Positions 36,464 to 40,416 of a stretch of 64,000 nt of DNA are shown here, piece by piece (position 1 is the stretch's first letter; each line of letters begins with the position of its first letter). The notes below the pieces were generated by a model. That model did not search any database. It worked only from the letters and a program-made list of their open reading frames with translations, and was not told the DNA's origin. Made by a program: the position numbers and the translations under genes. Location: sequence record OQ992562.1; one strand, given 5' to 3'.

Positions 36464-36997
36464 ATGCAGGATATCTTTCCGTATGACATGGCATCGAGGA
36501 ATGCGCTAGTAAAACTTGCGCGGGATGATTTAAAAATAAACTTCAAACCAGAAACAGTTACATTTGAAGATATGTTTTTTAGTCCAACCACGATTGAGCC
36601 TGGACGTACATTTATTGAAATGATCGACATCACTACTGACATTAAGTACATGTTAACTTACCGTCGGTTAGATTTTGCTGATCCACGTGCTATTGGTGAA
36701 GGATCTATCCTTAAGATAGTTGGTACTTTAACACCTAAAGCAATTGCTGAAGAAATTAACCGTTCACGAGGTTGGAAGCTTGGTCCAGATGATGTTTCAT
36801 TTGATACAACACCAATCAATGCAACTACGGATGTTGTTCCATACACGATAGTAGCTATGTCGAGTAGCTATGCTTACTATGGTGAATGTAATATACTAAT
36901 CCAACGTATTGATGATACGTCAGATACTATCCGACTATTAGAGAATGGTGCAGCACGTTATCTAGAAAATGGTCAAATCCGTTATCTAGAAAGTTAA
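36464..36997 (+). CDS. Virion structural protein with C-terminal RYLENG repeats (gp143-like)
   Basis: GAGGT RBS; LTYRRLDF family motif; ends TIRLLENGAARYLENGQIRYLES. Confidence 0.75.
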   Translation: MQDIFPYDMASRNALVKLARDDLKINFKPETVTFEDMFFSPTTIEPGRTFIEMIDITTDIKYMLTYRRLDFADPRAIGEGSILKIVGTLTPKAIAEEINRSRGWKLGPDDVSFDTTPINATTDVVPYTIVAMSSSYAYYGECNILIQRIDDTSDTIRLLENGAARYLENGQIRYLES

Positions 36998-37009
36998 GTA
37001 ATACCCTCA

Positions 37010-37045
37010 ATGAACCTAACCCAGGGTTCATACTGGGTTAATATG
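37010..37045 (+). promoter_or_regulatory. Overlapping inverted repeats plus TATG late motif upstream of endolysin
   Basis: ATGAACC/GGTTCAT and TAACCCAG/CTGGGTTA interleaved; TATG at 37042-37045. Confidence 0.5.
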
Positions 37046-37058
37046 TAGAGGTTATATC

Positions 37059-37841
37059 ATGAAAGTATTACGCAAAGGCGATAGGGGTGATGAGGTATGT
37101 CAACTCCAGACACTATTAAATCTATGTGGCTATGATGTTGGAAAGCCAGATGGTATTTTTGGAAATAATACCTTTAATCAGGTAGTTAAATTTCAAAAAG
37201 ATAATTGTCTAGATAGTGATGGTATTGTAGGTAAGAATACTTGGGCTGAATTATTCAGTAAATATTCTCCACCTATTCCTTATAAAACTATCCCTATGCC
37301 AACTGCAAATAAATCACGTGCAGCTGCAACTCCAGTTATGAATGCAGTAGAGAATGCTACTGGTGTTCGTAGCCAGTTGCTATTAACATTTGCTTCTATT
37401 GAATCAGCATTCGATTACGAAATAAAAGCTAAGACTTCATCAGCTACTGGTTGGTTCCAATTCCTTACTGGAACATGGAAAACAATGATTGAAAACTATG
37501 GCATGAAGTATGGCGTAATTACTGATCCAACAGGCGCATTACGTAAAGATCCACGTATAAGTGCTTTAATGGGTGCCGAACTCATTAAAGAGAATATGAA
37601 TATTCTTCGACCCGTCCTTAAACGTGAACCAACTGACACTGATCTTTATTTAGCTCACTTCTTTGGACCTGGTGCAGCGCGTCGTTTCTTGACCACTGGT
37701 CAGAATGAATTAGCTACTACCCATTTCCCAAAAGAAGCTCAGGCAAACCCATCTATTTTTTATAACAAAGATGGGTCACCTAAAACCATTCAAGAAGTTT
37801 ATAACCTAATGGATGGTAAAGTTGCAGCACATAGAAAATAA
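37059..37841 (+). CDS. Modular endolysin, PG-binding domain plus lytic transglycosylase (KZ144-like)
   Basis: [10 protein letters not shown]...DGIFG...DGIVG PG_binding_1; SIES catalytic Glu; SSATGWFQF; LYLAHFFG. Confidence 0.97.
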
Positions 37842-37924
37842 GATGTAGCAATAGAATGGAGTCTATGGTATCATGTGAAACTTCCCCTCATGATAAACCA
37901 CATCTTGTGTCAATGTAACTTTTT

Positions 37925-37944
37925 GAGAGTCCTTCGGGACTCTC
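37925..37944 (+). terminator. Terminator
   Basis: GAGAGTCC-TTCG-GGACTCTC-TTATG. Confidence 0.8.
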
Positions 37945-38046
37945 TTATGTTGTTAAAATATTACTCATTAGCAATAGTACATTACTGTATGAGTCTTCTT
38001 CGAAAGACTAACATGTTAGTGTTTCTTATACAGCAAGGAAATAAAA

Positions 38047-40416
38047 ATGGCAAATGCTACAGACAAAGGCAAGATCAGTCAACTGCCGGATCTAGCTACT
38101 CTTAACGATAGCGAGTATATTGAATTAATTCATACCGATGCAGCTGGTCAAGTCGATAACTATAAGTTTCTGCTGTCAAAACTACAGACTGGGGCACCCG
38201 GTCTTAGTGCGTACGAGATTGCCGTTAAAAATGGTTTCCAGGGAACTGAAACCGAATGGCTTGATTCGCTTAAAGGTAAATCTTCTTATCAAATCGCAGT
38301 CGATCTAGGCTTCGTTGGTACTGAAGAAGAGTTTATAGCATCCCTTAAAGGTGATGCTGGTAAGAGTGCATATGAAGTAGCTGTGGAAAATGGTTTCCAA
38401 GGTACTGAACAGGAATGGTTAACATCACTGCATGCAACCATGACTGCTGAACTACTCCAGACACTCTTAAATCAACAAGGCTATACAGTTAAAGATGTAC
38501 TGCGTGTAACTGGTAAGAATGGTGGATTATCATCCAACGCTGCTTTCCATAACTTTGCTTTCCTGTTTGATAAGCGCCTAAATCAAGATGACTTAACCGC
38601 TGGTGATAAAGTACCACAGCGTATGATGGAACAAGGCCGTATGGAAGCAGAAGGTTATTCTTATCTAAAGAACGCCTCTGCACCCACTACGCAAGGTGCA
38701 TTACCCGAATTACCTGAGTCTGAAATTCGTATTTACGACAATGGTGAATTCCAGATTGGTAGTTTAACTGATTACATTGCATTCAAGAATGACGGCAATA
38801 TCCGTATTGTTGAAGGCGCTGATGAATCAACTGTTGATCTTAAGAACCTTCCTAAAAATGAAGGTATTAGTGGCGGTGTATTCGTCAAAGATGTACAAGC
38901 AACTGACCCCAGTCAGAACGTAGGTAGTATTGTGCGTACCCCCGATGGGCACAGCGTACAGTCATGCCTATCAACTACTAGTAATGTTCGAGTTATCGTT
39001 GATGCAATAACTGGACATTCTAGTTATGTACCTAGTGTTAAAATCAATAACATAGATGCAGTTGTAACTCCTGGCGTTAATCCACCTATGTGGATTGCTA
39101 CTGCCGATATTGATCTTGGTGCACCCACTACTGAAGGTTATGCTGATATTGTTGTAGAACACGCTGATGGGGCTAAATTCACTACTAAGGTATTAGCCGA
39201 TACTCCCGCTAATATTACTAGTGCTGTATTTACTGGCGGTTATCCGTTAGGTCAAACAGAACTTAAAGAAGATGACCTTGTTGCAATTAAAGTAGTTACT
39301 GATGAAAATATAGTAGCATACGAAATTGCTGACTTTGGTGCACTGAAAGAAAGTAGTGGTACTGTTGCACCTACTAAAGAACTAGAGGTTACTGGTCTTT
39401 ACGTAGCTGACCGTGGTAATACTACTAAGGCATATGGTTTCCGTGTACGTGTTCAGAAATCCACTGGTTCATGGTCAGAATGGTTTACTTCCAGTGATGC
39501 TGGTTCCGAAGATAAAATTAACACCATGCAGTTAAACGATCTTCGCCCAGTTGTTAATATTGGTCAAGTAACTTATCCGTCTGGTCAAAGTGCTATTAAA
39601 GTAGGTGAAACTGCTACTGTAGCCAATACAGTATCTAATGCTGATAGTGTGGTTTATTCCTCACCAAATGATCAGCTCACTATAACCAGTGCAAATGAAG
39701 CAGAAATTGCTAAGGTAGTTACTTATAAGTCTGGTACTTATAACGACAGCACTAATAACCTATTAATTACTGCTAAACGTGCAGCTAATGGTAGTGTAGC
39801 TACGGCTACTGCTGTTGTAGCTATTGCAAATGCGGCTCCTACTGCAACGGTTACCTATCCAGCAGCTCGCCTTCGCTCAGGTGGTAACTTTGGAACCCAA
39901 GTACAAAGTCATGTCATTACTTTAACCTCTACTCAGAAACTAAGTGCAGCTCCGGCCATGAATGCGCCTGGCGGTAAGTGGGCTACTGAGGATTGGAAAT
40001 CTGACGCCACTGGTAAGGTATGGACACGTGCGTTACTAGTACATGACGATGATCCTAAAGGAACCTACGATTTTAACAGTGTGGTTCTAAAAGGTTTAGC
40101 TGGTGTTGAAGCTAATAGTGTAAATGGTGGTACTTACGTACTAGGTGGATTTGTATTCCGCACTCTAAGTGTGGCTGCTTGGCCGAACCGTGAAACTGAT
40201 ATTGGTACTGAAGTAACCAATACTGGTAAACTACGTTGCAGTAACCTATCTAAAGGTTCTACTGGTAGCTTAAACTTCACTTATAAGGCGGATGATGCAA
40301 ATCAAGTTGACACCTACACCATCAAGGATGGCAATAAGTGGTATAACTGTGACTCAGCAAACGCTGTGTCCAACACCACTGGACTGATGAAAATCGAACT
40401 TGAGGAAGTAGTATAA
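38047..40416 (+). CDS. Fibre/structural protein (gp145-like)
   Basis: N-terminal KISQLP module; three G(L/K)S(A/S)Y(E/Q)xAVxxGFxGTExE(W/F)xxSL repeats; Ig-like beta-rich body. Confidence 0.8.
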   Translation: MANATDKGKISQLPDLATLNDSEYIELIHTDAAGQVDNYKFLLSKLQTGAPGLSAYEIAVKNGFQGTETEWLDSLKGKSSYQIAVDLGFVGTEEEFIASLKGDAGKSAYEVAVENGFQGTEQEWLTSLHATMTAELLQTLLNQQGYTVKDVLRVTGKNGGLSSNAAFHNFAFLFDKRLNQDDLTAGDKVPQRMMEQGRMEAEGYSYLKNASAPTTQGALPELPESEIRIYDNGEFQIGSLTDYIAFKNDGNIRIVEGADESTVDLKNLPKNEGISGGVFVKDVQATDPSQNVGSIVRTPDGHSVQSCLSTTSNVRVIVDAITGHSSYVPSVKINNIDAVVTPGVNPPMWIATADIDLGAPTTEGYADIVVEHADGAKFTTKVLADTPANITSAVFTGGYPLGQTELKEDDLVAIKVVTDENIVAYEIADFGALKESSGTVAPTKELEVTGLYVADRGNTTKAYGFRVRVQKSTGSWSEWFTSSDAGSEDKINTMQLNDLRPVVNIGQVTYPSGQSAIKVGETATVANTVSNADSVVYSSPNDQLTITSANEAEIAKVVTYKSGTYNDSTNNLLITAKRAANGSVATATAVVAIANAAPTATVTYPAARLRSGGNFGTQVQSHVITLTSTQKLSAAPAMNAPGGKWATEDWKSDATGKVWTRALLVHDDDPKGTYDFNSVVLKGLAGVEANSVNGGTYVLGGFVFRTLSVAAWPNRETDIGTEVTNTGKLRCSNLSKGSTGSLNFTYKADDANQVDTYTIKDGNKWYNCDSANAVSNTTGLMKIELEEVV

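Follow-up and report, generated by a model that had tools for sequence, protein, structure and literature searches.

What anchors the gp145 fiber protein of phiKZ-type phages on the virion, and why does the C-terminus of the small protein gp143 recur behind the stop codon of the major capsid gene? These questions were raised by a window of 64,000 nucleotides (nt) from sequence record OQ992562.1 (the window is the whole stretch of DNA analyzed here). It was 98.7% identical to phiKZ and 100% identical to Pseudomonas phage PhiPizzaParty, and by these identities it is a phiKZ strain. A first-pass annotation had proposed that a repeated tag, present at the end of gp143 and in the capsid extension, forms an attachment pair with the N-terminal KISQLP module of gp145 (KIS head). 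Our analysis makes it probable that the tag of three repeats is a docking socket for fibers with a KIS head, and that in phages of the phiKZ type it is carried by both the capsid and gp143.

The C-Terminal Tag of gp143

The gp143-like protein (177 amino acids (aa); positions 36464–36997, plus strand) consists of a DUF7941-type globular part (residues 1–149) and a C-terminal tag, and its C-terminus reads TIRLLENGAARYLENGQIRYLES. The tag (residues 157–177; positions 36932–36994, plus strand) is composed of RLLENGAA, RYLENGQI, and RYLES. It had been annotated as three units of eight residues. Three units are indeed present, of which R157–A164 and R165–I172 are full and the third is truncated to R173–S177, with no residue beyond RYLES. 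Residues R157, E160, R165, E168, and R173 were invariant in 35 homologs with 32%–53% identity to gp143 of the window, and the tail is therefore the best-conserved part of the protein.

The match of gp143 to phrog_2935 was strong (4.6e-46). The match to PF25613 (DUF7941) reached 18.3 bits, which is under the gathering cut-off of 27, and PF25613 was present in the precomputed hits of many gp143 homologs. When the AlphaFold2 model of gp143 (predicted local distance difference test (pLDDT) 89.5) was compared to PDB structures by Foldseek, the only significant fold match was 9xqd_0, a chain of the outer peripheral baseplate of phiKZ (E 3.3e-7, template modeling scores 0.60/0.70, 154 columns). Based on a preprint on phage Goslar (10.64898/2026.04.21.720040), this chain is probably gp127. 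Pairwise BLAST of gp143 and Goslar gp23 revealed no similarity.

The gp143 tag and the capsid extension share 17 identical nt. As had been annotated, the sequence CGTTATCTAGAAAATGG occurs at 11303–11319 and at 36956–36972; these are the only two occurrences in the window, and two matches were found in 0 of 100 shuffles. The synonymous differences described earlier for the aligned codons were also seen, GGT/GGG right after the identical stretch and CTA/TTG one unit further on. Across the phiKZ genome as a whole, only the capsid extension and the end of gp143 matched the tandem tag pattern. When the six frames of the window were scanned less strictly, two further chance matches appeared, neither of which was a terminal triple repeat. 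The strict pattern matched only the capsid tail and the gp143 homolog in PhiPA3, Psa21, and Noxifer. In Phabio it matched the gp143 homolog only, and the capsid tail was read directly; 201phi2-1 gave no match to the strict pattern, yet its capsid tag was visible on direct reading. Five distant chimalliviruses gave no match to the strict pattern.

An In-Frame Extension behind the Capsid TGA

The gp120-type major capsid protein gene (747 aa; positions 9044–11287, plus strand) matches the phiKZ-type capsid gene with 100% identity and ends with TGA at 11285–11287. It is followed in frame by 26 codons and TAA (11288–11368, plus strand), which encode AGKGY and the units RYLENGTI, RYLEDGNA, and RKLEE. 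Translated behind the TGA, the extension reads AGKGYRYLENGTIRYLEDGNARKLEE. Its tag units are located at 11303–11365, and it lacks its own start codon. Just past the extension, an intrinsic terminator hairpin marks the 3' end of the capsid transcript (11376–11399, plus strand).

We compared the capsid genes of 201phi2-1, PhiPA3, PA1C, Phabio, Viktualia, Psa21, Noxifer, and RVTF4 and of four IMG/VR contigs. The capsid stop was TGA in all 13 members of the phiKZ clade examined, and each of them had an in-frame tail of 26–30 codons with three R-x-x-E-[DN]-G units, followed by a stop and a terminator; the hairpin and T-run behind the extension were comparable to those of the window in each relative. 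Synonymous turnover in the extensions of the clade was high (6 codons for Arg, 4 for Gly, 6 for Leu), and the other two frames contained stops in nearly all members. The locus thus combines a conserved TGA stop, an in-frame open stretch without a start codon, and conservation at the protein level, as expected for readthrough. Judged from these comparisons of sequence, the capsid extension and the gp143 tag are both under selection. The bases behind the capsid stop, TGA-[AG]CT-GGA-AAG-GG (11285–11302 in the window), were near-identical in most genera of the phiKZ clade; they could form a readthrough context or simply reflect a conserved GKG linker. A suppressor tRNA was not found within the window.

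The C-terminal arm of the phiKZ capsid protein (residues 728–747) lies in the central bundle of each hexon and contacts the outer protein gp244 at pentons (PMC11297242). The extension would therefore begin at the center of the capsomer and probably on the outside.

A quite different explanation is that the tail of gp143 functions in lysis control as part of a holin regulator, that the sequence behind the capsid stop is barely translated, and that the likeness of the two is due to gene conversion or to an RNA or DNA element. The gp143 gene lies within the lysis cassette, and in plasmid assays holin triggering was either advanced or blocked by gp143 (PMC12894885). Recombination between the two copies could yield the 17-nt identity, and the literature searched on phiKZ readthrough contained no description of the capsid extension or of an extended capsid protein. 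The frame and length of the extension and its Arg/Glu/Gly pattern were, however, kept despite diverged DNA and synonymous codons, and the stop was always TGA. Moreover, no other part of the gp143 family is as conserved as the tag, which is also present on tail proteins of phages that lack a lysis cassette of this kind. The contact of gp143 with the holin was proposed to occur via the first globular domain and not to involve the tail (PMC12894885). We consider this explanation highly improbable.

The KIS Head of gp145

The gp145 fiber protein (789 aa; 38047–40416, plus strand) comprises the KIS head, three repeats of the type 'SAYEIAVKNGFQGTE.EWL.SLKG', and a distal part. Its N-terminus reads MANATDKGKISQLPDLATLNDSEYIELI. 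The start at 38047 is 1050 nt past the gp143 stop, in agreement with the distance of about 1 kb given by the first-pass annotation. The head itself covers residues 1–46 (38047–38184, plus strand) and contains ...GKISQLPDLATLNDSEYIELIHTDAAGQVDNYKFLLSKL. In an alignment with 20 heads of other phages, E26 was invariant and K9 and I10 were nearly so. The head profile matched only gp145 in the phiKZ genome.

Database searches revealed little about this protein. No Pfam family was found for gp145, and a word search with residues 1–60 returned gp145 alone. The KIS-head profile had no significant match in the PDB (the best, with E 0.086, was a chance hit to a leucine-rich repeat), and an ESM Atlas search for the head gave nothing informative. 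A literature search with the motif strings resulted only in noise, and no paper describing the tag or the KIS head was found.

Tag Genes and Head Genes Are Neighbors in Unrelated Phages

Two scans of IMG/VR with DNA patterns of the tag resulted in 16 and 46 loci. The tag carriers of non-jumbo phages were P2 gpI-type baseplate proteins (PF09684), J-like tail tip proteins (phrog_1101), tail tube proteins (PF06199), and small adaptors of 45–86 aa; for one small adaptor, a sequence comparison to the PDB gave no significant match. In the IMG/VR carriers, the tag was located 0–4 residues from the stop. The gene after the tag usually started 0–30 nt later and opened with, e.g., MATKKISELDPAAALTGDELVEIVQDG or MGTALKISELPTAGEVSGSELLEIVQDG, and these heads were often followed by collagen-like or gp145-like repeats. 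Direct adjacency of tag and head was seen in RAY, RP12, two further loci (L049 and L064), and most of the non-jumbo loci.

We tested this coupling in both directions. For the forward test, a hidden Markov model (HMM) was built only from four gp145-type heads of chimalliviruses to prevent circularity. Among 3185 open reading frames (ORFs), 44 of which ended with the tag, 18 of the 35 hits of this model were the ORF right after a tag-ending ORF and started within 30 nt of its stop, compared to about 0.5 hits expected (P~1e-24). In the reverse test, a tag directly preceded 16 of 17 real KIS heads and none of 10 spurious pattern hits (P~1e-6). The co-occurrence of the two motifs, which the first-pass annotation had suggested as a check, was thus found in both directions, and the distribution among chimalliviruses described below agrees with it. 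Inspection of 26 tag/head pairs revealed no clear covariation, since both motifs are too conserved. Phage RSP, which has a J-like protein with a degenerate terminal tag and no adjoining KIS gene, was uninformative.

Some of the IMG/VR loci had unusual starts of the tag gene. In L083 and L089 (43 and 62 kb), the tag frames lack a start codon (in L083 there is none near the start of the frame) and overlap the last 31–34 nt of an upstream ORF of 119–131 aa in another frame. Frameshifting may add the tag at these loci. The small adaptor of L047 and L082 starts from an ATG of its own, which overlaps the upstream stop (ATGA).

Tag and Head in Chimalliviruses

In phiKZ, 201phi2-1, PhiPA3, Phabio, and Psa21, one or two KIS heads were present, always just downstream of the gp143 homolog. 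A 198-aa DUF7941 protein of RAY ends with the tag-like sequence LLTESGQWLTTEDGQPLKLESVA and is directly followed by a collagen fiber with a KIS head. RP12 has a gp145-like KIS head right behind a 227-aa ORF, which bears a degenerate tag and was not scanned for DUF7941. FLC9, Moabite, and Goslar had neither tag nor head. Within the set of chimallivirus genomes checked, tag and head are present or absent together (six with both and three with neither, RP12 having a head and a degenerate tag).

PhiPA3 and Psa21 have a second, short KIS-head ORF (NC_028999, 149944–150066, 235 aa; NC_062581, 155596–155706, 206 aa; the aa figures refer to the open frames). By its coordinates it is located between the gp143 and gp145 homologs.

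Extensions behind the capsid stop were also found in phages without the tag. The capsid gene of Goslar (NC_048170, minus strand, 33440–35662 of locus L035) ends with TGA and is followed by an in-frame tail of 28 codons, TTVAASLDDILDDNVADGFIAPDIHPAP. Its ..DNVADGFIAP.. mirrors the C-terminus ..DNVADGFVKP.. (..LADNVADGFVKPTVSVVG) of gp23, an abundant small DUF7941 protein, whose gene (6863–7405 of the same locus) lies beside the endolysin gene. The capsid genes of FLC9 (..DLDGFKVYPG), Moabite (..NPLSGFDPA), and RP12 (..SPDGFNEFGA) likewise have TGA and short in-frame tails, and those of FLC9 and Moabite resemble the tails of their own small DUF7941 proteins (..NLGGFTPYEPS and ..ENLGGFDAPAA). RAY, RTH11, pVa-21, RSF1, and Eowyn have TAA as capsid stop and no tail. 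Small DUF7941 proteins seem to have tails of two kinds, and the capsid extension seems to copy whichever the phage has; only the RxxEDG type seems to be accompanied by KIS heads.

These observations bear on another explanation, in which the tag docks to the next DUF7941 protomer (gp143, gp126, gp127) at its N-domain, and the readthrough capsid protein seeds DUF7941 filaments instead of mounting gp145. The Goslar preprint (10.64898/2026.04.21.720040) includes gp143 among the DUF7941 proteins, predicts head-to-tail oligomers of such proteins via the disordered tail, and reports filaments of gp22 by electron microscopy (EM). The fold of gp143 resembles a phiKZ baseplate chain, and the mirroring of a gp23 tail by the capsid tail of Goslar has its parallels in FLC9 and Moabite. 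On the other hand, the RxxEDG tag ends non-DUF7941 proteins in phages that have no DUF7941, and gp126 and gp127, the other phiKZ DUF7941 proteins, lack it. Tails of the Goslar type have another motif, and KIS heads are absent from Goslar, FLC9, and Moabite, so the two types of tail probably have different partners. We regard self-docking of DUF7941 proteins as unlikely for the phiKZ tag. It had been our first reading and was demoted when the tag was found on non-DUF7941 carriers.

Predicted Complex of the Tag and the gp145 Head

We modeled three copies of gp145(1–136) together with gp143 residues 148–177, a 30-residue tag peptide for which an alignment of 35 rows was used. The interaction prediction score from aligned errors (ipSAE) was 0.78, 0.78, and 0.76 for this complex and 0.00–0.07 for the controls (0.07 being the best of three). 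The runs agreed in at least 79% of the contacts, and the pLDDT of the partner was at least 79. The modeled interface comprises residues 6–11 (DKGKIS), 28, and 36–38 of every gp145 copy, and gp143 residues 155–177 all contact the trimer. The interface includes K9 and I10, which are near-invariant in the head, as well as the conserved core of each repeat. In the model, repeat 1 (158–160) is located between gp145 copies 3 and 1, repeat 2 (166–168) between copies 2 and 3, and repeat 3 (174–175) between copies 1 and 2. As each repeat bridges a different pair of copies, a single peptide with three repeats would fill the three equivalent grooves of the trimer.

The co-fold, also suggested by the first-pass annotation, supports binding of the tag to the head without showing it. 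Together with the coupling in both directions and the phyletic pattern, this prediction argues for the tag and the KIS head being an attachment pair, as had been proposed.

The tag could instead be a structural or adhesive element without a partner, i.e., a beta-turn cap, an element for oligomerization of its carrier, or a ligand of the host surface, with the adjacency to KIS heads reflecting shared placement in fiber modules. Genes of fiber modules are often neighbors anyway, and the tag was already modeled with a pLDDT of 71–84 and periodic beta bridges in the gp143 monomer. Such an element would hardly account for coupling in both directions at 0–30 nt across carriers of unrelated folds, for an ipSAE so far above the controls, or for the correspondence of three repeats to three grooves of a trimer. 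We judge it very unlikely.

A Docking Socket on Capsid and Baseplate?

Taken as a docking socket, three repeats of R-x-L-E-[DN]-G-x-x would form a portable site for fibers with an N-terminal head of about 40 residues of the type 'KISxL...ExxE[IV]V'. One tag on one monomeric carrier would bind one fiber trimer, with a predicted stoichiometry of 1:3, and the single peptide with three repeats would overcome the mismatch of a trimeric fiber with a monomeric anchor. One copy of the socket would be fixed at the C-terminus of gp143, a relative of the baseplate-periphery protein gp127 by its DUF7941 fold. The other would be present at low dose on the capsid, where TGA readthrough would lengthen the C-terminal arm by the 26-residue tail. 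By this route gp145 could be attached at the periphery of the baseplate and to a small number of capsid subunits, and gp146 may ride on gp145.

gp146 is a collagen-repeat fiber protein of 1093 aa (40416–43697, plus strand; Collagen, 1.1e-24). The stop of gp145 and the start of gp146 overlap at 40413–40416 (shared base 40416). Such an overlap points to coupled translation and perhaps to a composite fiber of gp145 and gp146. The phiKZ record labels both proteins as 'structural head protein'. A phiKZ atlas of 2026 left gp143, gp145, and gp146 unplaced and assigned gp131/133/134/135 as tail fibers (PMC13250141). The gp144 endolysin gene (PG_binding_1 and SLT; 37059–37841, plus strand) is located between the tag gene and the fiber gene.

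Several points weigh against docking of gp145 to the tag at these two sites. In the co-fold, no alignment was used for the gp145 chains (pLDDT 67–75). The job also differs from the calibration set of the tool by its own alignment and multiple copies, and therefore the benchmark counts for the same mark (58 of 80 solved complexes, compared to 2 of 110 mismatched pairs) are only a rough guide. We infer that the extension is translated, that binding is real with a 1:3 stoichiometry, and which positions are occupied on the virion; display of the tag on the capsid depends on the predicted readthrough, and a location of gp143 in the tail on the likeness of its modeled fold to the baseplate chain. 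No fibers on hexons were reported in two cryo-EM studies of phiKZ (PMC13250141, PMC11297242), in which sparse flexible fibers would average out. gp143 regulates the holin gp142, acting on its N-terminal domain, according to the plasmid assays of a 2026 paper (PMC12894885), which does not preclude a role in the virion. Transposon insertion sequencing found gp143 to be dispensable and revealed no insertions in gp145 or gp146 (preprint 10.1101/2025.11.23.690004), and consequently gp143 cannot be the sole anchor of gp145.

The gene arrangement adds to these points. In phiKZ, the endolysin gene separates the tag gene from the head gene by about 1 kb, so the two are not adjacent; RAY, RP12, and the non-jumbo phages have no endolysin gene between them. 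The first-pass annotation had both gp145 and gp146 mounted as fibers. This holds for gp145 insofar as it has a KIS head; the head HMM matched only gp145 in the window, with no head detectable in gp146, which leaves gp145 as the sole candidate for direct docking. Outside phiKZ, a tail-tube family (165 aa, PF06199) carried the triple tag at 11 loci with no KIS-head gene next to it, and fibers along the tail tube would be unusual. Two members of a tag family of 640–680 aa precede another gene that is not a KIS head. The tail-tube loci are L067, L068, L076, L078, L080, L081, L085, L088, L091, L096, and L097; in L091, a weak KIS-head hit was found 7.5 kb downstream of the tag gene.

With these points weighed, we still consider it probable that the tag is a socket for KIS-head fibers and that capsid and gp143 both carry it in the phiKZ type. 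We hold only tentatively, though as a serious possibility, the wider proposal that such a plug and socket is portable and common to tailed phages, and that UGA readthrough of the phiKZ type places the essential fiber gp145, with gp146, on hexons and baseplate.

Comparison to Known Systems

In phage JBD30, the J-like hub has its C-terminus docked in the center of the N-terminal domain belonging to the trimeric receptor-binding protein (PMC11445458). As proposed here for the tag, a C-terminal peptide of a non-trimeric carrier (gp53) enters the axis of a trimeric N-terminal domain, the 'thigh' domain of gp54 (PMC11445458; PDB 8RK3). The fiber gene follows the carrier gene in both cases, and the JBD30 hub (PDB 8rk3_o) is homologous to one family of the tag carriers described above. 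Unlike these carriers, hubs of the JBD30 type have no tag and do not align through it. The receptor domain was described as a helical bundle with peripheral sheets (PMC11445458), whereas the KIS-head profile had no significant match in the PDB.

The small DUF7941 proteins provide a second comparison. gp143 belongs to the same fold family as the filaments of the Goslar preprint, and in Goslar, FLC9, and Moabite, as in phiKZ, the putative readthrough tail of the capsid protein copies the tail of a small DUF7941 protein. The phiKZ clade differs from Goslar in its RxxEDG triple repeat, which is also present on non-DUF7941 proteins and would have KIS-head fibers instead of DUF7941 domains as partners.

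Extended capsid proteins are known from Qbeta, in which A1 results from UGA readthrough of the coat gene, and from T7, in which gp10B is a frameshift-extended capsid protein. As in our proposal, a minority of the subunits is extended by recoding where the major capsid gene ends, and in Qbeta this also occurs at UGA. phiKZ differs from both in being a 280-kb double-stranded DNA phage, with a predicted extension of only 26 residues. Unlike the extensions of Qbeta and T7, the phiKZ extension copies the tag of another virion protein and is apparently a docking site and not a domain.

Significance

If the pairing is real, it would account for the order of tag gene and KIS-head fiber gene in many unrelated phages and would provide an annotation rule for fiber anchors in metagenomes. 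A modular pair of about 24 and about 40 residues would also be a handle for swapping fibers or for attaching cargo to phage particles. phiKZ is a model for nucleus-forming jumbo phages, in which gp143, gp145, and gp146 were not placed by two recent cryo-EM studies. A socket shared by capsid and baseplate would, if true, locate the gp145/gp146 fibers and give this well-studied phage a recoded isoform of its capsid protein.

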